Below, piece after piece: positions 1 to 46,600 of a DNA stretch of 64,000 nucleotides (its first letter is position 1; each line of letters opens with the position of its first letter). The notes beneath the pieces are model-generated. The model had not been told where the DNA came from, did no database searches, and saw only the letters and a program-made list of their open reading frames with translations. The DNA lies in assembly GCA_002104905.1 (NCBI GenBank), contig MCFE01000350.1, positions 24,883-88,882 on the forward strand, in the 5' to 3' direction. This DNA comes from Basidiobolus meristosporus CBS 931.73. Its lineage: Eukaryota > Fungi > Basidiobolomycota. The position numbers and the translations under genes are program-made.

Positions 1-1061
1 TTCGGACAATTTCCAAGGATTTAGTGGAGGCTTAGATAAACGAGTCAAAATGTATTTAGCTGAACCATATATTTACTGTGAATACAACCATCCAGAGTTT
101 CTAAACGCTGTACTTTAGGTTCGACTTTACAACTTCGAAGGAAACAATCCTCGGCACACATGAAGATGCAGTGAAATGCACCGAATACACCACAGAGACT
201 AGTAGGATTTCTTCCCTAATGAATATCACTCGGAACCCAACCTAATTACTTCAACCAAATGTAGACATGTTGATCACTGGTAGTTGGGATAAAAGTGTGT
301 GTCTTTGGGACCCTAGAGTCCAGGAGGCACTGGTTGGCCGATACATGCAGCCCTCAAAGGTGTACTCTCTCGATATTACCCAAAACAAGCTGGTGGTAGC
401 TATGGCCGACCGTCACGTGTACATCTATGATATTCGTAACATGAAGGAGACCATGCAAACTCGCGAGAGCTCATTGAAGTACATGACCCGGACTGTACGC
501 TGCATGCCCAATGGAGAAGGTTTGTCCAACTCTGCAGAGAAATCCATGAGCACTTGTTAATCTTATGGTACTTAGGGTATGCTATTGGCTCAATTGAGGG
601 TCGCGTTGCGGTAGAATTCTTTGATCCATCGCCCGAGTCGCAATCACGCAAATACGCGTTCAAATGCCACCGTCAAGCTATTGAAGGCGTAGACTACGTT
701 TATCCGGTGAATGCCCTGGCCTTCCACCCCACGTATGTATACCTGGCCTTTCTATTCTTGGATTTTACCAACCTGTGCTTTCATCTCTAGCCATGGGACG
801 TTCGCCTCTGGAGGAGGTGATGGAGTGATCAACGTATGGGACGGATTCAACAAAAAGAGACTTCGCCAGTTCCCGAGATATCCTACCTCCATCTCCTCAC
901 TAGCGTTTAGCTGCGACGGCACCATGCTGGCGGTCGCTTCGTCCTATACCTATGAAGAAGGAGAGAAAGACCACGCCCCCGACTCGATCTTCATCAGAAC
1001 CATTGCCGACTCCGAGGTCAAGCCCAAGACACTTCCCAACCCTAGCCCCAACCCACAATAG
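1..1061 (+). CDS. BUB3: Mitotic checkpoint WD40 protein Bub3 (5' end outside window; at least 5 exons)
   Basis: Spliced exons read ...GGLDKRVK / [15 protein letters not shown] / [18 protein letters not shown] / [16 protein letters not shown]...KYAFKCHR...[10 protein letters not shown] / [35 protein letters not shown]...SYTYEEGE, the Bub3 signature. GT-AG introns at about 52-118, 202-264, 520-575 and 733-790. Stop TAG at 1059-1061. Confidence 0.93.
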
Positions 1062-1259: not shown

Positions 1260-1793
1260 TCAATCGTTCAGCGGGACCATATTCAAGGGCATGATTTTCA
1301 CATCTTCCCAGACCCGACCAACAAGGTACGGATCTTGACTGATCAGCTCCTTGACTTTTTGAATACTGTCAGCCTCGTAAATATGATAGGAGCCAAGCAT
1401 CTTCCCATAATCGCTATCGTCCGATTTAAGCGCCCCTGCTGCTAGCATAAGCTTGTCCTTATAAAGTGTACGGCATCGACTAAGGTGACTATCGCGAGTG
1501 GCCAAACGACGTGAAATGGCCTCTTCGTCGATGAAATCTTTAGCTATCACTAGGTACTGCTTTCGAGCTGTAATGGAGGCTCGATTAATTTCAACACCGC
1601 TAGCTACCAACTGAAACTCAACTGACCTTCGAGAGAGGTAGTGAAGAAACGGGCTACGTGTTCATGAGATGGAAAGACGAATACTTTAGTATCTAGTTGA
1701 CGACTAAGCACGCTCGGAATAAATGGGCTCAGTTGTTGTACCTGAGGATAGTTTTCGACTACTGATAAGTTTACAACGGTTCAGAAGGGACAT
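1260..1793 (-). CDS. YCII-related domain protein, likely mitochondrial (3 exons)
   Basis: Last exon KQYLVIAKD....RRLATRDSHL...LMLAAGAL...KMLGSYHIYEADSIQKVKELISQDPY...VWE fits the YCII family. Putative introns 1568-1626 and 1693-1741 join in frame to an ATG at 1793, giving an Arg/Ser-rich N-terminus (MSLLNRCKLISSRKLSS). The start is less certain than the domain. Confidence 0.72.
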
Positions 1794-2170: not shown

Positions 2171-3884
2171 ATGGTGAATGTTGAATGGAGTTCGCAGGAT
2201 GTCGAGCAAGCCAGAAGGAGCATTCTGAATCGCATCACTGAAAGGATACCGCCGAAAGAGCTGGTTGGACTTGAAGAGCAAGAAGCGTGAGTTCTCCTCG
2301 TTAGTGTACGTTTCATGTAACGCCTGCTCATTCAATTGATTTCAGTAAAATCTATGATCTGTTGGAGCGAACGGTCTCCCAAGGTGAGAGTAACTCAGCC
2401 TTGTTGATAGGGCAGCGAGGAAGTGGCAAGAGCATGGTATGGACAGGAGTGTGGAGTGCATACGAAGCACCGGCTGATTGATTTTCACTTAGCTCGTAAA
2501 CCGAGTTCTCCAGAATTTGACTCAGAAATATCACGTTGACAACAAAAAAGATTTCTACCAAGTTCACTTGAACGGGCTTGTGCAAACGGACGATAGAATT
2601 GCCTTGAAAGAGATTATTCGTCAGTTATCTTTGGAGGAGGAATTCGACTCAACTTTGGTAAGTAGGGGCTTTCAACCTGTTGAGAAGGCCTTGATATACT
2701 TAATCCATCGTCTCGATCATAGAGCTCTTCTTTTGCTGAAACTTTGGCTTTCCTACTGAATCTCTTGAAACAAGGCTCGAAAGATAACGTGTCCATTGTC
2801 TTTATCCTCGACGAATTCGACCTGTTTGCCCAGCATCCAAAGCAAACCTTGCTTTACAACCTGTTCGACGTTGCCCAAAGCAGTCAAAATCCAGTCGCAG
2901 TTCTCGGACTTACTTGTCGCTTGGTAAATAGGGGATTTCGGTGACGAGAATTTCACCCTGGATCTGTTACTAACAACAGTAATGCAGGATTCGCTCGAGC
3001 TATTGGAAAAGAGAGTCAAGTCCAGATTCTCGCATAGACAAGTTCTCCTTTTCCCGCCTGACACGTTCCGCGAATTCATGACTGCTATACGCAATGCATT
3101 AGAATTGGAAGAGGAAGTGACCAATGAAGTCTATAGGGAGAAGTTTAACGAATCTCTCGACGTAAGATAGCCCAACCATGGCTCTACTTTGTCCGGCGAT
3201 ACTAACAACGGTCTCTTAGGTTGTTCTCGCTGACCCCAACATCAGCAAATCCTTCCGAAGGATTTTCGATCTTACCAAAGACATTCGAGCAGTCTTTAGA
3301 ATATGCGTAAGCTTATAGGCACTATAGAATTTCTACCAGGACCCTCTGTTTAACCTGAAGACGCTAGGTTGGTGCCGTAAGCTCACTCTCCTTGAGCCAG
3401 CCATTTCTTGACCTGGGTGAACTGTATGAGGCCGCACTTCAACAACGTGCGGACTCCAAAACCGAGCTTCTCAAAGGTAACCATTTTTTGCAACCATTGA
3501 CTCCAGTCACCACCTAACCCGAACCCAACAGGACTTTCTCTCCTGGAACTCTGTCTGATTATCGCCATCAAGCAACTCCTTGAGCTCGAATTGTACACCT
3601 TCAATTTTGAGATGGCTTACAACGAATACAAGGAATTCATGAATCTAGCTCTAGCGCAGGGCGGTGGCGGCATGAAGCTTTATAAGAAAGCGGTAGCGAT
3701 GAAAGCATTTGAAAATTTGATTTCAATTGAATTGATTCAGCCAGTGGAGAATTACGGGAAGTCCCCGAAAGAGTATCGAATGATGAAGGTCATGCTGGAG
3801 CCTCTTCAGATTGCTGATGCTGTACTCAAGTATCGGGATTGCCCAACATTGGTTAGAAAATGGGGTACGAAATGGCTGGAGTAG
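2171..3884 (+). CDS. ORC4: Origin recognition complex subunit 4 (multi-exon AAA+ ATPase)
   Basis: Walker A in [17 protein letters not shown], Walker B in [23 protein letters not shown], and [17 protein letters not shown]-terminal winged helix [10 protein letters not shown]...[11 protein letters not shown]. Several short GT-AG introns. Confidence 0.93.
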
Positions 3885-4085
3885 GACGTGTATCATATAG
3901 TTGTGTAATAAATATCAATAGGCACTTGGTTTTTTGGGTAAAACTGACTGGTCTTCATCATCATGTGCGAGAATGCTGCCTTTATCTGATGGTGTTGGTG
4001 GGTTCGGGAATTAGCAATTTTGAGATCTGCTGATGTTTTGCTGCTCCTACTTATAATACCGTTGGACTGATTTAACTTGGTGTTT

Positions 4086-4161
4086 CTAAATCTGATAATT
4101 CCTCAATGTTATCAGATTTAGTCATCTCTGATTCGTAATCAGACATGAATATTATCAGATT
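4086..4161. promoter_or_regulatory. Cluster of three exact AATCTGATAA sites (RATCWGATAA, SreA/Sre1-type GATA repressor consensus)
   Basis: AATCTGATAA at 4089-4098 (+), 4109-4118 (-) and 4152-4161 (-). The first two form a 13-bp inverted repeat with a 10-nt spacer. The cluster lies about 550 bp upstream of the LRR gene ATG. Confidence 0.7.
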
Positions 4162-4706
4162 AACCATAGCCAAGTTGCCCCAATCAGGGCAGAAACCCCA
4201 AAAATTAGGACTCGCAGCCCGTTCTCTGAATATAAACCCATCCTACAGTTGCTAAATTAGGATGATTCCTTCGTGTAGCATGAAACACATCAAAGGCTGC
4301 ATCAAGCCCATCCAATGGGAGGTTCACGAGCATCGCTTAATTAGCAGGGAGATGGGAATATTATTTTAATGTTGACTTCAAATTTGGTAAGATAAAAGTT
4401 TTGGTACTTATTGGGAAGAAATAGCCGACGTTAATAAGTGCTTCAGGTGCTTTCTGCGTTTCTTTTGTCTTTCACAAGTAGTCTTCTATTAGTAAAGCGT
4501 ACCTGGTCCTCAGCTGTTAATATATGTATCTACCCGAGCACTAGCATTGTACGTTATCGGAAACTTCGAAGAATCGAGTAGATCTGCCGTAGCATAGGCA
4601 GAGAAATTACTTTTCGTCACTACCCACCACGCACTGAGCCTTTCCAGTTTTGGGACCACTGTTGTCGACGTTTCTATTCAGTACTTCCCCTAATAATATA
4701 TCCCTT

Positions 4707-6551
4707 ATGCATTTGAAACCCTCTGATAAATCGAATGAGAGCTCTCTTGCTGGTCGGAGACCTGTAAAGCCAGCACTCCTAACAAACCCATCCAACACAC
4801 AAAGTGGGCAATTTCCCGAGACCATCAATTGTTCTTGGAACAAAGAAAGCGCCGACCTTCCCGACATCGAGGCCTGCAATGTTGTGTGGGATTCTAAGAA
4901 CCAGCATTCAACACAGTTAGTCAATACTTGTCAGGGAGTGATACATGCAAAGTCGACACAGAACAGTCCACTGTTTGTGTGCGGGGATAACGCAAAGCAA
5001 CACAGCGCTACTTCAACTCAAGCTGCCGAGCAAAACGCCAAAACATCGATTTGTTTGCGCCGAAGACGACTGTCCAACGCCTCTATGGAGCACCACATCC
5101 GTGACCGTTTATTAGCGGAAGCGATGTCTAAGACATCCACACCGATTCACGATTGTGACTATTGGATTGATCGAAGCACGTCATTTATCCACCTGGCGGA
5201 GGTGGATCTATCTCGCAACCGACTAACTCAGTTGCCAGAATGTATTATTAATATTGCAAGTCGGGTGAAGATTTTGAATTTAAGCCATAACAGGCTCACC
5301 ACTTTCCCCAAGCAGTTAAGCCGCTTCTCTAACTTGGAGGTGCTGGATTTGTCACACAACATGATTTCCGGTGAGCTGCCAGAAGAGCTTCCGAGTGCTC
5401 TTACCAGTCTGAGGGTCTTGAGATTGTCCGGTAACCAGATCACCAGACTTCCCGAAACCTTGGGTGAAAGCATTCGCTTGGAAACGTTAGTGTTGGGCTC
5501 GATCTTTGGTGGTAATTTGTTGCAATCCTTCCCTGAAAAATGCATCTCCCGACTCGTAAATCTGAAAGAGCTTGACTTGACTCAAAACCAACTGGCTAGC
5601 CTTCCATCAGACATTGGCCATCCCAAATCGCGATTAGAGAGGCTAGCAGTGGGGGAGAACCGACTCCTTTCACTTCCGTGCTCCATTGGATTGTGTCGGT
5701 CACTTCGTTCACTTGACCTCTCAAGGAATCGTCTTCTGGATCTGCCCATCGAGATTACTGATCTTAGTGGCTTAGAGACATTGGACCTGACCGAAAATAA
5801 GCTTTGCGTTATCCCAGGGGACATTGCCTTGTTTATGAGTAGAACCACAGTGCTACTAAGCGGAAATCCTTTCACAAACGGAGCCCGTAGACATGATCCC
5901 ACTCACGAGGCTGGCGAGTCCACTAGCCAAACCAACCTTTCATTGATGCAGCAGCTCCAATCAACTTCTTCAACAGCCCATTGCATCCGACCTAATTCAA
6001 CCACCTCCCCGCATTCTGGACAGCCATCCGACCACCACACATCTGCATTTCATTCCCACGCCTTGCCCTCATCACATACCAAATCTCCGACAAAACCGCC
6101 AGATCTCTTGCCCTCACTACGTGAATTCGCAGCACGCAAAGTATTGAAATACTCCATCCCCATCCCACCATATCGCATCCCAACCAGTCTGCTGAGATAC
6201 CTTGAGCGCGGTGCACGACCATGTTGCAACTGCCTGGATCCATATGTCCGCGAATGGATCAGCTGTGTAGAGGTCAAAAATTATCTTGGTCATCCGAAAG
6301 TCCCCAGAAGCATACGCTTTTGCTCCACGACGTGTATGGTCCAAACAAACTGTGCTACCAACAAAACCGCCCTACCAAGCGGCAGCTCCATGGAGTTCGC
6401 CCTCACCAGGCTCCCAAACCAACCGACAAAGGCTTCGATCAAGCCGTTCTCCTCCCTCCTGACACAAAGATCCAATCAACCCTCCATCAAATCAAAAAAA
6501 CCCTCCTCCCAACGCCATGCTAAACGCACCGTCGTGACCACCGATTGGTAG
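4707..6551 (+). CDS. Leucine-rich-repeat protein with C-terminal BC-box and Cys-rich tail, LRRC58-like
   Basis: Intronless ORF (first ATG 4707) with about 10 LxxLxLxxN repeats ending in LLSGNPF. The tail LPSLREFAARKV...PY.IP..LLRYL...C..C...Y...G...P....CS..C aligns by eye with the animal LRRC58 C-terminus as I recall it. Confidence 0.75.
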   Translation: MHLKPSDKSNESSLAGRRPVKPALLTNPSNTQSGQFPETINCSWNKESADLPDIEACNVVWDSKNQHSTQLVNTCQGVIHAKSTQNSPLFVCGDNAKQHSATSTQAAEQNAKTSICLRRRRLSNASMEHHIRDRLLAEAMSKTSTPIHDCDYWIDRSTSFIHLAEVDLSRNRLTQLPECIINIASRVKILNLSHNRLTTFPKQLSRFSNLEVLDLSHNMISGELPEELPSALTSLRVLRLSGNQITRLPETLGESIRLETLVLGSIFGGNLLQSFPEKCISRLVNLKELDLTQNQLASLPSDIGHPKSRLERLAVGENRLLSLPCSIGLCRSLRSLDLSRNRLLDLPIEITDLSGLETLDLTENKLCVIPGDIALFMSRTTVLLSGNPFTNGARRHDPTHEAGESTSQTNLSLMQQLQSTSSTAHCIRPNSTTSPHSGQPSDHHTSAFHSHALPSSHTKSPTKPPDLLPSLREFAARKVLKYSIPIPPYRIPTSLLRYLERGARPCCNCLDPYVREWISCVEVKNYLGHPKVPRSIRFCSTTCMVQTNCATNKTALPSGSSMEFALTRLPNQPTKASIKPFSSLLTQRSNQPSIKSKKPSSQRHAKRTVVTTDW

Positions 6552-8674: not shown

Positions 8675-9718
8675 ATGCCAACTCGATTCCGAAACATGTT
8701 AAGACACTTGGCAGCCAGAGCTTTGAAAACCCCTTTCCATGGCGACTACACCAGCGTACGCCAAATGGCAACGACTAACTGTCACTCCCCGATCATTGTA
8801 CCATTCTTTCATAAGCCATCTTCCACATTCACATACATCATTGTCGATGAGAAAACCTCAGAAAGCGCCATCCTTGATCCCTGTGTGGACTACGACCTCA
8901 TTTCAGGGCGTATCTCCTCGAAACCTCTCGATGAAATCATCGACTTCGTTAAATCCGAGAAATTAAATGTGAAATGGTTGCTTGACACCCACGTTCATGC
9001 CGATCATCTCTCAGGTAAGTCAGAGTCACCTTTCCCCCACAGCTGAGCGACCATCTCATCTACGTCCAACCAACTAGGCTTGGAGCACCTGAAGAAAAAC
9101 CTCCCGAATTCCCAAACCGCCATAGGAGAGAATGTGAAGATGGTTCAAAAGCGAGTGAACAAATTTTTCAACCCCGTGCGGCTGGATCATGATGGCTCCC
9201 AATTTGATTTCCTCTTGGCCGATGGTCAGAAGATTCAAATCGGTGACATCGCCATCAAGGCCATCCACACCCCTGGTCACACGCCAGACTCCATTTCCTA
9301 TCTCGTCAATGATTGTCTGTTTGTTGGTGACACGATTTTCATGCCTGATGTAGGCACCGCCAGATGTGATTTCCCAGGTGGCTCGGCGGAGCAGCTCTAC
9401 CGAACCATCATGGACAAATTCTACACTCTGCCCGACACCACCAAGATGTTCATGTGCCATGACTATCCACCTGAATACCGTGGCAAGGAACCCCCACGGT
9501 ACTTGTCAACTGTCGCTGAGGAAATGGAGAAAAACATCCACATCAAAAAGGACACCACCATGGAGGAGTTCGTGAAGTTCCGCAACGCCCGGGATGATGC
9601 CTTGGACCTCCCGAAACTTCTACTTCCTAGCTTGCAGATCAATGCCATCGCTGGAAAGCTCCCCGAACCGGAGGTGGATGGGAAGAGCTACATCAAGTTC
9701 CCCATCAACTTTTTTTAA
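8675..9718 (+). CDS. MBL-fold persulfide (sulfur) dioxygenase, SdoA/Blh (type II)-like, with probable mitochondrial presequence
   Basis: DTHVHADHLSG metal motif, HTPGHT, GDTIFMPDVGTARCDFPGGSA, CHDY and a C-terminal LPKLLLPSLQIN...LPEPE..GKSYIKFPIN. One intron at 9015-9077. Arg-rich, acid-poor N-terminus. Confidence 0.85.
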
Positions 9719-33880: not shown

Positions 33881-33897
33881 CAGGCTTGCAACTGGAC
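33853..33897 (+). other. -1 programmed ribosomal frameshift signal
   Basis: G GGA AAC in the gag frame (33853-33859), a 6-nt spacer, then a perfect 11-bp stem GTCCAGTTGCA/TGCAACTGGAC (33866-33876 / 33887-33897). Confidence 0.88.
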
Positions 33898-36800
33898 CCA
33901 CCCATGAAAATCCAGCATATCCAAGAATCTTCCTTTGCCACAAAATCTATCCAGTCCTTGAGAATGCCTGTCAAAATCCAGATCCCTGACTCCAGTCCTG
34001 TCCCAGCCCTAGCCCTGATTGATTCCGGTGCTTCATCCTGTTTCATTGACCAAGCCTTTGTCCAGAAGCACTCTATTCCTGTTACCTTGAAATCCTGTCC
34101 AGTCCAAGTAGAAGTTATTGATGGAAGATCACTCTCCTCTGGTGCCATTACCCATGAAACATGCTTACTCCAGCTGTCCAGTACTGCCCACCAAGAAAGA
34201 ATTGCCTTCAACATCATCAACTCACCACACTATCCTATTGTGCTTGGAAGCTCATGGTTGAGCTACCACAATCCGAGTATTGATTGGAAATCCAAGATCC
34301 TGTCATTCACCAGATCCCACCAAGTCAACTCCATGAAATCTCCAGACCCTGATAACCGTGAAAAGACGGTTGCCAACAGTTCAACAGCCCAAGATACCTT
34401 GCCAGCTGAAGGAGCCCCCTCAGCAACTATACCAGCCAAGTACCAAGAGTTTGCCCATGTCTTTGACAAGAAGAAAGCAGAACTCCTCCCTGACCATTGG
34501 CCTTATGACTGCCCTATTGACCTTGAAGATGGAAAAGTCCCTCCATTTGGCCCAATATATAACCTCTCCCAGCCGGAGTTGAAAGAACTCCATGGTTATA
34601 TTCAAGAAAACCTCCAGAAGGGTTTTATTCAGCACTCCAAATCACCTGCTGGAGCCCCAATCCTCTTTGTCAAGAAGAAGGATGGCACCCTCAGAATGTG
34701 TGTGGACTACCGTGCTTTGAATAAGATCACAGTCAAGAACCGCTACCCCCTGCCCCTGATCAACACACTGTTGGATCAGCTATCTGCTGCCCAAGTCTTC
34801 ACCAAGATAGACTTGAGAGGAGCTTACAATCTTGTCAGAATCAAGCCTGGTGATGAATGGAAAACTGCCTTTCGCACAAGATATGGCCACTTTGAATACA
34901 AAGTAATGCCATTTGGCCTCACCAATGCCCCTGCTGTGTTTCAACACCTCATGAATGACATATTCCGTGAATACCTTGACCATTTTGTGGTAATCTACCT
35001 TGATGATATTCTCATATACTCCAAGAGCCAAGATGAACATGATGAACATGTCAAGAAAGTATTGAGAAAACTAGACTCTGCCGGTCTCTATGCCAAGCTA
35101 GAGAAGTGTGAATTTGACCAGAGAGAAGTGGAATTTCTTGGTTATCTCATCAGCCCTGAGGGAACAAGAATGGACCCAAAGAAAGTTGACTCAGTCCAAT
35201 CCTGGAAAACACCAAGCTCAATCAAGGAAGTACAATCCTTCCTGGGATTTGCCAACTTCTATCGCAGGTTCATAGTCAACTACTCCAAGATAGTCACCCC
35301 TCTGACAAAGCTTACCCAGAAGAACACACCTTTTGCCTGGAATGAGGAGCAATCCAGCTCATTCAACCAACTCAAGAAATCTTTCCTGAAGGCCCCCCTG
35401 CTTGCCCACCCTGACCTTGAGAAGCAATTCATAGTGGAGACTGATGCTTCTGATTTTGCCCTTGGTGCCATACTCTCCCAGTATGATGAGGACAATGTGT
35501 TGCACCCCATTGCATTCTACTCTCGGAAGTTTTCCCCTGCAGAGATCAACTACGATATCTATGATAAGGAGTTGCTTGCCATCATTGTAGCCTTTGAGCA
35601 ATGGAGACACTACCTGGACGGTGCAAAACACAAAATCAAAGTCTTCTGTGACCATAAGAACCTTGAGTACTTTGCAACTTCCAAAGTACTAAACCGGAGA
35701 CAAGCCAGATGGTCACTCTTCCTGTCCAGCTTTGACTTTACTATCACCTATAGACCTGGTGCAAAGCAAGGAAAGCCTGATGCCCTGTCCAGAAAAAAGG
35801 AATATGCCCTGGAAGAGGGAGATGATGCCTGTTGGCAAATGGAACACCCACTGCTGAGCAAGAAACATTTTGAGATTCTTGCCACCCAGTCCTCAAGTCT
35901 TGTCATCCCTTCATTCCTAGTAAGGATATCAGAGTCCCAGGCCTCTGATATGACTTCCAGCAGCATCAAGAAATATCTGGAATCCCCAGTTGGGCCCCCT
36001 CCCAAGTTCCCAAACATCCAGAACCTGCATTTGGTAAACAACCTCATCTACCACAAGCAGCAGCTTTATGTCCCAGATCTTGCCACCCAGCTAGACATCA
36101 TTAAGTCTCGGCATGATTCAATGGCTGCAGGCCACTTTGGTACTGCCAAAACCTTGAATGCTATCAAAAGAGATTTCTGGTGGCCTAGAATGATAACTCT
36201 TATCAAAGAGTACATTCTGACTTGTGATATTTGCAACCGTGCAAAACCAGCCAGACACCAGCCCTATGGACTTCTTCAACCCCTGCCTATCCCAGAACAC
36301 CAATGGAGATCTATATCTATGGACTTCATTACTGACCTCCCTGAGTCATGTGGCTTCAATGCTATACTTGTAGTGGCTGACCGGCTGACCAAGATGGCTC
36401 ACTTCATCCCTTGCTGTAAGAACACTGATGCAAAAGAAACTGCTGCTTTAGTCCTGAAGAATATTTTCCGCCTTCATGGTATCCCCAGTGATATTGTGTC
36501 AGATAGAGGCCCACAGTTTGTGTCCAAGTTTTGGAAACACTTCATGCAATACCTCGGTGTTCAAGTCAAGCTCTCTACTGCCTTCCATCCACAGTCTGAT
36601 GGCCAGACTGAAAGAATCAACCAGATTCTGGAGCAATACCTCCGGTGCTATATCAATTACCAGCAAGACAATTGGGTTGACCTACTCCCTGTTGCTGAGT
36701 TTGCCTACAACAACTCAAGTCATAGTGCAACCGGTTTTACACCATTCTATGCAAACTATGGATTCCACCCTCAGTTTGATATCCAGATTCCAACAAACCC

Positions 36801-37401
36801 AATGAGCCCACATGCGGCTGAACATGCCCAAGCAATCCAGGACATCCAGAGCACCCTCAAGGAAGAGCTATCCTTAGCTCAGGAAAGCTACAAGAAATTT
36901 GCCAATCTAAAACGGCATCCCAGCCCTGATCTTAATGAAGGAGATTCTGTATGGTTGCTCAGAAGAAACATCAGCACCAACCGCCCTTGTGACAAGTTGG
37001 ATTTCAAGAAACTTGGTCCCTTTAAGATCAAGAAGAAGCTTAGCCCTATAGTATATCAGCTACAGTTACCAGCAAGTATGAAAATCCATGATACTTTCCA
37101 TGTGTCCCTCCTGGAGCCGTATTGTAGGAACACATTGCCAAACCGGCTAGAAGCAAAGCCCCAAGCTATCCAGGTTGACCAACATCAAGAATTTGAAGTT
37201 AAACAGATTCTAGACTCCAAGTATATCCGGTCAAAGCTGTACTACTTAGTAGACTGGATTGGTTATGGCCCAAGTGACCAAACATGGGAACCAGCTACAC
37301 ATCTCACTAATTGTCAAGAACTAGTTACCCAGTTCCACCAACAATATCCTGCAAAACCTGCCCCAAAGGGAAACAGAGCTCCGCCTGGAAGAGGAGAATA
37401 G
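33853..37401 (+). CDS. Pol of the chromovirus (PR-RT-RNase H-integrase-chromodomain), reached by -1 frameshift
   Basis: ALIDSGAS protease, [20 protein letters not shown] RNase H, HHCC and DDE integrase (SMDFIT, SDRGPQF, DGQTER), GPF motif, and chromodomain [10 protein letters not shown]...[17 protein letters not shown]. Pol is in the -1 frame relative to gag. Confidence 0.96.
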
Positions 37402-43640: not shown

Positions 43641-46600
43641 TGATGTAAGAGTCTTGGAGATATTGGAAGTGATTGGGAGAACAAGTAGAAAATGTGGTTT
43701 TCACTTAATGATTTATTGAATGTAAAAGTAGTATTTATACTTTTACCTGGTCTTGGCATTACAAACACGTAGAATAGGTTAAGGAAGGTCCCAAGAACAT
43801 GTGTGCAAAGTTTGGGGCTGTTTGAACAACTTTGAGAATTTTCATGTTCTGGGTACCTGGTTTTTTGGTGACAATATTCTAAGTAAATCCCAACAAGGAA
43901 TTTAGTCAGTATTCTCTAGGATTTGAGGGTAATGATCTAAGTGACTAAGTTAGGTGAATATTTAGGTGGAACTACAAATTCTTACTACACTCCCACTCAG
44001 CTAAATGTTCATACTGACTAGTCCTAATTTTGACCTAAGATATTCAAACTTGTCTCTAGCTAATGGTTGGAAATATGTCTGCAATCATTTCATCTGTAGG
44101 ACAGTAAACTAAGCTAACTAAGTTATTCTCTATAGCTTCACATATGAAATGATGTCTAATATATATGTGCTGGGTTCTAGCATGAAAAGTTGGATTTCTA
44201 CCAAATTGTATACATCCTTGATTATCTTGAAATATAGTATTAGGCGTTTTTTGACATAGGCTTAAATCTGTAAAAAGTCTTCTTAACCACATTGCTTCTT
44301 TTGTAGCTTCACATGCTGACATATACTCTGCCTCTGTGGTGGAAAGTGCTACGGTTTGTTGCTTTCTTGAATTCCATGAAATTGCTCCTTTACAGTAAAG
44401 AAAGGTGTATCCTGTGGTGGATCTTCTGTCTTCTAAATTTTGTCCCCAATCAGCATCAGAGTATCCCACAAGATCCTGTTCTGAATCCTTATAAGTGTAT
44501 CTTAAGCAGAAATCAGCAGTTCCTTTTAGGTATCTAAAAATCCACTTAACTGCTGCAATATGATTAGATCCACAGTTCTGATTATGTTGGCTGACAACTC
44601 CCACTGAATATGAGATATCTGGACATGTTCCAAGCATAATATACATCCAACTGCCAACCCTATGCTGATAAGGAAAGTCAGGGCTTTCAGATGGCACCAA
44701 GCTCTCTTGATTTGGTTGAGTTTTGACTAAGTTAAGGTTTGTCTCCATTGGGGTAGCTCCTGATTTACAGTCTTCCATTTGGTTCTTCTATAGTATATCT
44801 TAAATATACTTGGATTGACTTAGGGTGATAGTCTGGGTACTTCTGTCTATGGAGAGCTTAATCCCTAAGTAGTAACTAAGTTCTCCTAGATAAGACATCC
44901 TGAACTCCTTAGATAGGCTGGATTTAGTCTCTTCCAATGTTTCTAGGTTATTGGCAGCTATAATAAGATCATCCACATATAGAGCTAATAGAACTGGATT
45001 TGCTCTATCTGGCTTATAGTATATACTATAGTCAGCATTACTTCTTTTGAAACTCAAAGATTCCAAATAAGAATCTATCTTGCAATTCCAGGCTCTTGGT
45101 AATTGTTTGAGACCATATAGTGACTTTTTAAGCTTGCAGACCAAATGGGGGTTATCTTGGTCAACATACCCATCAGGCTGGTCCATATACACGTCCTCAT
45201 CAAGTACTCCACTCAAAAATGCAGTTTTTACATCCATTTGGTGAATAAAAAACTTATATTTGGTTGCATTAGCCAACATAATCTGATGAAATTAAACTTG
45301 GCTACCAGTGCAAAGGTCTCAGTATAGTCAAGTCCTTTTGTTTGAGAGTATCCTGTGGCTACAAGTCTTGCTTTGTATCTTTCAATTGTACCATCAGCCT
45401 TGTATTCTGTCTTGAAGACCCATCTGCATCCAATTGATTTTTGGTTGATTGGTAATTTGACTAAGTCACAAGTTTGATTTTCCATCAGGGCCTGATATTT
45501 CTCAGTCATTGCAGATCTCCAAAACTTTGTCTGAGGGCTATTTAGGGCCTCTTTTACAGTCTGGGGTTCATCAACATGGACTGAATAGGCATAGGCTAAG
45601 TTTGTACCCTATTGATAAGTAATTTTGGCTATTTCTTGTCCAATTGGATCTCTGGGCATTTGATACTGGAATGATCACTTCTGGGATATTCCTGGCACTG
45701 ATTCTGGCTGATCCACAGTTGTAGAGTCCTCTAGATTGAAAGAATTCTCATTGTTTTGCTTTGATTCAATCCTGACAATTGGTGGACTTGAGATCAAATT
45801 TTTGTCATTATCTGATGTCATTTTTTGTGAAAATTTTGAATTTTCATCAAACAACACATCCCTGGACTTGATAAGCTTCTTTGCTTTGGTATTGTAGAGT
45901 CTGTATGCCTTACTCTCATTGCAGTAGCCCAAAAATATGCATTTTACACATTTTGGCTCATATTTTGACTGATTTCCGGCCAGTTTTTGGCATATGCTGT
46001 ACACCCAAATATTCCTAGATGCTCTGCACTTGGTCTGAATCCATACCATGCTTCAAATGGAGTAAAATCACAAAGTATTCTGTTATAACTTCTATTTTTA
46101 AGATATACAGCAGTGGCAACTGATTCCACCCAAAATCATAGGATAATTTTTGACCATGGATCATAGATCTTGCCATATCAATTATTGATCTGTTGGCACA
46201 TTCAGCTACTCCATTTTGCTGTGGGGAGTATGGTACAGTAGTCTCTTGCTTTATCCCATGAATTTTGCAGAAGTGGATGAAGAGTCTTGAGGTATAATCT
46301 TCACCATTGTCAGAGTGTATTTTCCCTTTTTTTTCACCAGTTTCTCTCTCCGCCATGGCCTTAAGCTCCCTGAGCTTAGACAGAGCTTCTTCCTTTCTCT
46401 CCATGAAGTAGACCCATGTGTATCTTGAATAATCATCAATAAAAGTGATTAAACACTTCATCCCGCCTAAGGATAAATTTTGCATAGGTCCACACAGATT
46501 TGAGTAAATTAGATCTAGTTTTTTCTTAGCTTTGATATACCTGGAGCTCTTGAACAGTTGTCTGGCTTGTTTCCCATATATGCAGGCCTCACAGTGGTCC

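Follow-up and report, generated by a model that had tools for sequence, protein, structure and literature searches.

Conserved GATA-type boxes upstream of an LRRC58-like gene in early-diverging fungi: a candidate target of iron control

We analysed a stretch of 64,000 nt from Basidiobolus meristosporus CBS 931.73 (MCFE01000350.1, positions 24,883-88,882; hereafter, the window), which contains a gene for a leucine-rich repeat (LRR) protein preceded by a cluster of four boxes of the form ATCWGATAA (Table 1). The initial annotation of this DNA had described three exact copies of a 10-mer, AATCTGATAA, within 73 bp, two of them arranged as a perfect inverted pair, and had considered the LRR gene the only one starting downstream. 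The word count and the repeat arms bear this out, and the LRR open reading frame (ORF) is indeed the next ATG-initiated gene after the cluster, with ORC4 ending upstream of it at position 3884. The intergenic region between ORC4 and the LRR gene spans 822 bp. Since the stop codon of ORC4 occupies positions 3882-3884 and an AATAAA sequence is found at 3907-3912, all four boxes, including a distal one that fits the relaxed word, lie past the probable 3' end of ORC4; they stand 555-725 bp ahead of the LRR start codon.

The 10-mer occurs exactly three times in the window, always inside these 73 bp, compared with a mean of 0.36 copies expected by shuffling; three or more copies were reached in 0 of 100 shuffles. 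Likewise, at least four ATCWGATAA words in the intergenic region were obtained in none of 2000 dinucleotide shuffles, and elsewhere in the window this word is present at one site only (45808), inside transposon-like DNA. Boxes 1-3 carry one more A than the relaxed word, at its 5' end. The inverted repeat that holds boxes 1 and 2 has a hairpin potential of −16.1 kcal/mol (z = −7.2). A small second palindrome, TCTGATT-CGT-AATCAGA (4127-4146), is located between boxes 2 and 3; it carries the CTGAT/ATCAG half of the box without GATAA.

Table 1. Features of the studied locus and its surroundings, in window coordinates.
Feature	Position	Strand	Basis or remark
WD40 gene, probably BUB3	267-1061	+	Pfam WD40 matches below cut-off
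ORF, counterpart of the B. ranarum YCII-domain gene	1260-1610	-	Position and DNA similarity
ORC4, last exon; neighbour upstream of the cluster	3591-3884	+	Pfam ORC4_C, E = 1.1e-19
Distal fourth box, ATCAGATAA	3982-3990	-	Relaxed word ATCWGATAA; ~100 bp past the ORC4 stop, ~70 bp past AATAAA
Perfect 13-bp inverted repeat holding boxes 1 and 2	4086-4121		Arms 4086-4098 and 4109-4121, spacer 10 bp
Box 1, AATCTGATAA, left core of the inverted pair	4089-4098	+	Exact word search
Box 2, AATCTGATAA, right core of the inverted pair	4109-4118	-	Exact word search
Box 3, AATCTGATAA	4152-4161	-	Exact word search
CCAAT box and CAGAAACCCC block, collinear in B. ranarum promoters	4180-4199	+	Sequence conservation
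TGCTAAATTAGGA block	4250-4262	+	13/13 identical with B. ranarum ortholog locus L001, 5506-5518
LRR gene, single exon, 614 aa, LRRC58 family (probable)	4707-6551	+	ORF; next ATG-initiated gene after the cluster
LRR domain, residues 160-392, about ten repeats	5184-5882	+	Pfam LRR_8, E = 5.6e-25; AlphaFold2 pLDDT ~95
C-terminal module, residues 467-546: BC box SLREFAARKV, Cul2 box PYRIPTSLLRYL, four Cys, predicted beta-hairpin	6105-6344	+	
Acyltransferase gene, after the LRR gene		-	
Metallo-beta-lactamase-fold gene, two genes past the LRR gene	8675-9718	+	

The full ORF of the LRR gene encodes a protein of 614 residues, in which Pfam detected LRRs only; the public gene model (P0002, 396 aa) is truncated at the N-terminus and starts at an internal methionine. 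The complete protein is 71% identical to P0001 of Basidiobolus ranarum (629 aa) over 97% of its length, and the 614-residue ORF matches the B. ranarum proteins over 97-100% of its own length. Outside the LRRs, the most conserved segment of the family is the C-terminal module formed by residues 467-546, which is also the last folded part of the protein. Compared by itself with the Protein Data Bank (PDB), this module gave weak matches, to Xenopus Lrr1 (E = 0.005, over the BC/Cul2 box only) and to human LRRC58 (9T7V_B, E = 0.009, residues 260-342). A profile built from 18 fungal sequences kept LRRC58 alone. With a profile made from the best 42 members of the family, of which the named ones are all fungal, LRRC58 (9T7V_B, residues 259-336) was matched over the full module with an E value of 3.4e-6, and LRR1 with values of 0.03-0.09; with a profile of 69 sequences the values were 5.5e-12 for LRRC58 versus 4.4e-5 for LRR1.

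LRR1 is the substrate receptor of CRL2-LRR1, a cullin-RING ligase (CRL) that acts in animals on the replisome, in the unloading of the replicative helicase CMG (Cdc45-MCM-GINS). The neighbouring ORC4 gene and the first PDB match had suggested that the fungal gene could be its ortholog, and both proteins consist of LRRs followed by a VHL-type BC/Cul2 box. We rejected this candidate because the E values of the profile searches are four to seven orders of magnitude better for LRRC58 and because the match to LRR1 covers the BC/Cul2 box but not the cysteine loop and the hairpin. In addition, no PH domain was predicted at the N-terminus of the fungal protein, where AlphaFold2 (AF2) predicted the first 112 residues to be disordered.

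When the 18-sequence profile was run against 1.84 billion representative proteins, 117 proteins were retrieved. The named ones belong to Mortierellomycota, to Mucoromycota (Umbelopsis, Absidia, Hesseltinella, Mycotypha, Cunninghamella, Radiomyces, Spinellus, Zychaea, Apophysomyces and Dichotomocladium), to Calcarisporiella and Bifiguratus, and to an aphelid. A single animal protein was included, an LRRC58-like protein of an acoel (E = 3.8e-4 in 1.84e9 proteins), whose best match in the PDB is LRRC58 (3.6e-62) and whose alignment with the window protein is collinear over both the LRRs and the module.

At the level of individual residues, A267, L282 and L290 of human LRRC58, whose mutation abolishes its association with Cul2 (bioRxiv 10.1101/2025.09.23.678073), align with A476, I491 and L499 of the fungal protein; A476 is invariant in the family and L499 nearly so. 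The four cysteines of the module (C506, C509, C539 and C543) do not vary among 69 family members, and three of them (C509, C539 and C543) correspond in the alignment to C301, C331 and C335 in the zinc loop of LRRC58 (PMC13156300). The AF2 model places helices at 471-482 and 493-498 and strands at 518-524 and 532-538, which matches the description of LRRC58; the pLDDT (predicted local distance difference test) of the strands is only 50-75. A Foldseek search with the full AF2 model returned generic LRR proteins only, and 9T7V was absent from its results, probably because it was released after the April 2026 cut-off of the fold library; the ESM Atlas gave no usable match for the C-terminal module. 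Taking the sequence comparisons together, we regard it as very probable that the LRR protein is a receptor of the LRRC58 family. The initial description of it as LRRC58-like agrees with the profile searches, in which the C-terminal module matches human LRRC58 and retrieves an animal ortholog, and the family in fungi would represent a new branch of a known protein family. No paper on fungal LRRC58 members was found in the literature.

The statement in the initial annotation that animal LRRC58 is an Elongin B/C cullin adaptor for the cysteine dioxygenase CDO1 proved correct (PMC13156300, PMC12589099). LRRC58 destroys CDO1 and is stabilised by cysteine starvation (PMC13156300, PMC12589099, PMC13158863), and it has been called conserved across animals (PMC13158863). 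With this CRL2/CRL5 receptor, known as LRR-2 in Caenorhabditis elegans, the fungal proteins share the LRR solenoid, the BC box, the Cul2 box, the four-cysteine zinc loop and the cullin-binding residues, together with a two-stranded sheet that is predicted at low confidence in the window protein. In contrast, they are 600-1000 aa long, have an extra N-terminal region and carry a disordered insert of 75-250 aa between the LRRs and the BC box. Their tail also differs. Most of the residues with which LRRC58 senses cysteine (N298, D317, F318, C319, Y322, Y329 and the -VLLG end) are not kept. The fungal protein has C506, N525, Y526, L527, P530 and R537 at those sites and ends in -DW; only the pairs P297/P505 and F318/Y526 are similar. 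Other motifs of the fungal family are D-I-E-[AS]-C in the N-terminal region (DIEAC in the comparison with LRRC58), RRRR[LF] before the LRRs (RRRRL), and an invariant tryptophan as the last residue; the members from Mortierellomycota add a tail rich in cysteine and glycine (CKGGQTYWPV ... CSGGCLGGGVCEW).

The conservation of the boxes was evaluated by comparing the window with 12 fetched loci, which come from B. ranarum (two), Mortierellomycota (four), Endogone, Ambispora (two), Umbelopsis, Hesseltinella and Calcarisporiella. ATCWGATAA is present upstream of the LRR gene in 12 of the 13 loci, which represent four fungal phyla, Calcarisporiella being the exception. In B. ranarum, the ortholog (L001) has four boxes, between −785 and −341 from the ATG, and the paralog (L002, JASJQH010007281.1) also has four, between −1255 and −790. 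A site on the plus strand followed 19-23 bp further on by one on the minus strand is common to the window and to both of these loci, and L001 has in addition a third site on the minus strand 43-46 bp past the second box, a counterpart of box 3 of the window. All 12 GATAA cores within the cluster zones of the three Basidiobolus loci carry the ATCW extension, which is missing from the cores in the remainder of these intergenic regions. The W position varies, being T in the window and mostly A in L001.

The DNA around the boxes has diverged to a degree that prevents its alignment, in the comparison of the window with L001 as well as in that of two Mortierellaceae. In a BLASTN comparison of the intergenic regions of the window and L001, only a 24-bp block with AATAAA and the 13 bp at 4250-4262 could still be aligned. 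The boxes were not in register in a global MAFFT alignment of the intergenic regions, and the sites were then mapped directly. Between B. meristosporus and B. ranarum it is the word itself, and not its surroundings, that is kept. Locus L002 is a segmental duplicate of the YCII-ORC4-LRR block that lost ORC4 and kept YCII (80% DNA identity), the LRR gene and the cluster, which indicates that the cluster and the LRR gene stay together. Between the GATA cluster and the LRR start codon, the CCAAT box with its CAGAAACC block matches positions of about 5410-5440 in L001; transcription is predicted to start a short distance past this box. Such a CCAAT box could bind the CCAAT-binding complex, the partner of HapX in Aspergillus.

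Outside Basidiobolus, two or three boxes precede the ortholog in Haplosporangium, Mortierella claussenii, Actinomortierella wolfii and Dissophora globulifera, and in two of these four Mortierellomycota loci a pair of boxes forms a direct repeat with a distance of 23-24 bp. Endogone has one box in an intergenic region of 182 bp, and the two Ambispora species have one to three. Shuffling each locus separately gave P ≤ 0.002 in nine of ten loci (the window and L001-L009). The loci of Umbelopsis, Hesseltinella and Calcarisporiella were fetched after the hypothesis had been formed, as a test of its prediction; Umbelopsis has one exact box at −69 and Hesseltinella, a member of Mucorales, one at −169. 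When the 12 fetched loci were pooled, we counted 24 boxes in 20.7 kb of DNA upstream of the LRR genes; the genic DNA (80.5 kb) contained 12, and the remaining intergenic DNA (18.8 kb) none. No gene other than the LRR gene is shared by all loci with boxes. The initial annotation had proposed motif conservation upstream of orthologs as a check and a dispersed footprint of a miniature inverted-repeat transposable element (MITE) as a possible origin of the repeat: the motif is kept in the loci described above although the surroundings cannot be aligned, and the 10-mer is found nowhere else in the window, related loci sharing only the 9-bp word. We are therefore highly confident, from this pattern of sequence conservation, that the cluster represents a real, conserved cis-element.

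With respect to the factor that reads the boxes, the claim that they correspond to the extended site of the iron-responsive GATA repressors of fungi is supported by the literature: ATCWGATAA has been published as the motif of the SreA regulon, in Aspergillus fumigatus this extended word and not HGATAR marks the regulon, and it agrees with the in vivo sites of Urbs1 and Fep1 (PMC2610380). The word was also noted in the promoter of the iron-repressed rhizoferrin synthetase gene (rfs) of Mucor (PMC9226013). Two SreA homologs with overlapping targets in DNA affinity purification sequencing (DAP-seq) are known in Rhizopus microsporus, GATA Znf4 and Znf8 (PMC12638772), and a survey of fungal GATA factors, with B. 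meristosporus among the species covered, described the class that regulates siderophores as well conserved (PMC5311114). The regulons of SreA, SRE, Urbs1, Fep1, Sre1 and SREB in Dikarya share with the locus described here the extended word and its clustered copies in promoters, including inverted and close pairs. They differ from it in that the host is here an early-diverging fungus and the target a candidate ubiquitin-ligase receptor instead of a gene for iron uptake, siderophores or iron storage. A regular-expression search of the window and the twelve fetched loci for GATA zinc fingers found none, Rfam gave nothing credible for positions 3800-4800, and the literature offered nothing useful on iron-starvation transcriptomes naming the LRR gene or on Cul2 in Mucoromycota. 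Judging from the word, we favour, with moderate confidence, an iron repressor as the factor that reads the boxes.

In the mechanism that we propose, the four boxes at 3982-4161 would be putative sites of a two-finger GATA factor of the SreA/Urbs1/Fep1 class. With sufficient iron, the repressor would sit on the boxes and hold down the LRRC58-like gene; the two sites of the inverted pair are separated by approximately two turns of the helix, and a dimer may occupy them. Iron scarcity would de-repress the gene, and its product, an LRR substrate receptor, would use its BC box and Cul2 box to dock on Elongin B/C and on Cul2 or Cul5. The receptor would then mark a target protein for degradation by the proteasome. 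Iron probably controls the LRRC58-like gene; the binding factor and the direction of regulation are what we infer from the kind of site. The reading as a whole, which combines the boxes, the iron repressor and the promoter of an LRRC58-family gene, is in our opinion slightly better than even. It is rather doubtful that the substrate of the fungal receptor is cysteine dioxygenase (CDO), an idea that rests on analogy with the animal system, and "iron sparing" by the removal of one enzyme is a weak rationale. A link with iron is conceivable because CDO1 belongs to the non-heme iron enzymes and iron metabolism is influenced by cysteine levels (PMC12589099). An improbable but wider scenario would be an ancient connection between iron status and cysteine catabolism, in which iron starvation of early-diverging fungi induces the transcription of a CRL2/5-LRRC58 receptor that removes the Fe(II) enzyme CDO or another iron or sulfur enzyme, so that more cysteine and glutathione become available for iron sensing and the assembly of Fe-S clusters; the cysteine sensing of the animal protein would then be a later addition.

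Several observations weigh against control by an iron repressor. In the AT-rich locus of Ambispora leptoticha (L009) the enrichment of boxes is weak (P = 0.14), and Calcarisporiella has two sites with one mismatch and no exact one. The boxes of Mortierellomycota and Endogone lie in a promoter shared with the divergent gene of the NatB subunit MDM20, and in L005-L008 they are nearer to its annotated start. The control of LRRC58 in animals is post-translational and depends on cysteine instead of iron. Finally, every site also fits the generic HGATAR of nitrogen-type GATA factors, and the GATA factors are expanded in early-diverging fungi and bind similar regions in the DAP-seq of Rhizopus (PMC12638772).

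These last two points lead to the strongest of the alternatives, according to which the boxes are real GATA sites read by another factor, either of the AreA/NIT2 type or a lineage-specific GATA paralog, so that the gene would respond to nitrogen, amino acids or sulfur. Pairs of GATA sites within approximately 30 bp are typical of NIT2/AreA binding. Among the targets of the Rhizopus GATA factors, all of which bound similar regions, amino-acid biosynthesis and sulfate assimilation are over-represented (PMC12638772), and control by sulfur or amino acids would be fitting for a protein that regulates cysteine catabolism, as LRRC58 does (PMC12589099). On the other side, the ATCW extension accompanies every GATAA of the cluster zones and is kept across phyla, while GATAA outside the clusters lacks it, and the partial palindrome implies a two-finger factor. 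In Dikarya, a two-finger GATA factor means the iron-repressor class. Together with the preference for the extended word over HGATAR in the SreA regulon of A. fumigatus (PMC2610380), this makes a different GATA factor, in our judgement, the less probable reader, though one to be taken seriously.

Much less probable is that the boxes belong to a neighbouring gene, that is, to the 3' end of ORC4 in Basidiobolus or to the divergent NatB/MDM20 gene in Mortierellomycota and Endogone. The cluster begins approximately 100-280 bp past the ORC4 stop codon, the inverted repeat could form a strong hairpin, and the position of the boxes with respect to MDM20 in L005-L008 has been mentioned. However, L002 keeps four boxes without ORC4, MDM20 is not a neighbour in Basidiobolus, Ambispora, Umbelopsis or Hesseltinella, and only the LRR gene accompanies the sites at all loci that have them. 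A role of the repeat as an RNA hairpin or ORC4 terminator was rejected, since the hairpin is not conserved: its z value is 0.2 in the paralog L002, and the pairs of Mortierellomycota are direct repeats. The divergent pair itself is kept across phyla, the LRRC58-like gene being head-to-head with the MDM20 gene in Endogone and in four Mortierellomycota (L004-L008). As for a chance match or a dispersed repeat such as the terminal inverted repeats of a MITE, which the perfect 13-bp inverted repeat of boxes 1 and 2 might bring to mind, the pooled counts set it aside as scarcely credible, given also that no shuffle reached the observed number, that the 10-mer is confined to the cluster, and that orthologous promoters of four phyla have the word in common but not the DNA around it.

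The idea of an E3 substrate receptor whose abundance follows iron has precedents in FBXL5 of mammals and BTS/HRZ of plants. In those systems the protein itself senses iron through hemerythrin domains, whereas the control proposed here is transcriptional, and there is no homology with the fungal protein. The identification of LRRC58 as the receptor responsible for destroying cysteine dioxygenase in animals dates only from 2025-26. The comparisons presented here indicate that its family probably extends to early-diverging fungi (Basidiobolus, Mortierellomycota, Mucoromycota including Mucorales, Glomeromycota and an aphelid), in which the promoters would have kept the word of the fungal iron repressors for several hundred million years. 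If control by an iron repressor is true, this would place a ubiquitin-ligase receptor in an iron regulon of fungi for the first time and provide a bridge between iron and cysteine homeostasis. The groups concerned include agents of mucormycosis and basidiobolomycosis, diseases in which iron acquisition is central.

Beyond the LRR gene, the order of the genes of the window is the same in the B. ranarum contig L001, and the best protein matches of the window are from this species, with 63-71% identity. The metallo-beta-lactamase-fold gene, found two genes downstream of the LRRC58-like gene (10300-11324 in L001), has among its best solved relatives 4YSK/4YSL and, more distantly, 4CHL and 2GCU. 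The former we take to be bacterial type II persulfide dioxygenases and the latter ETHE1; the product of this gene would be a non-heme iron enzyme of sulfide/cysteine catabolism. No functional link with the LRRC58-like gene can be claimed, because this neighbourhood is common to B. ranarum only. Further along the window, between approximately 24000 and 48000, there are blocks of low GC content (35-38%) with long ORFs of the retrotransposon type, for example that at 33886-37401 (1171 aa), and the isolated ATCWGATAA at 45808 lies in this part.

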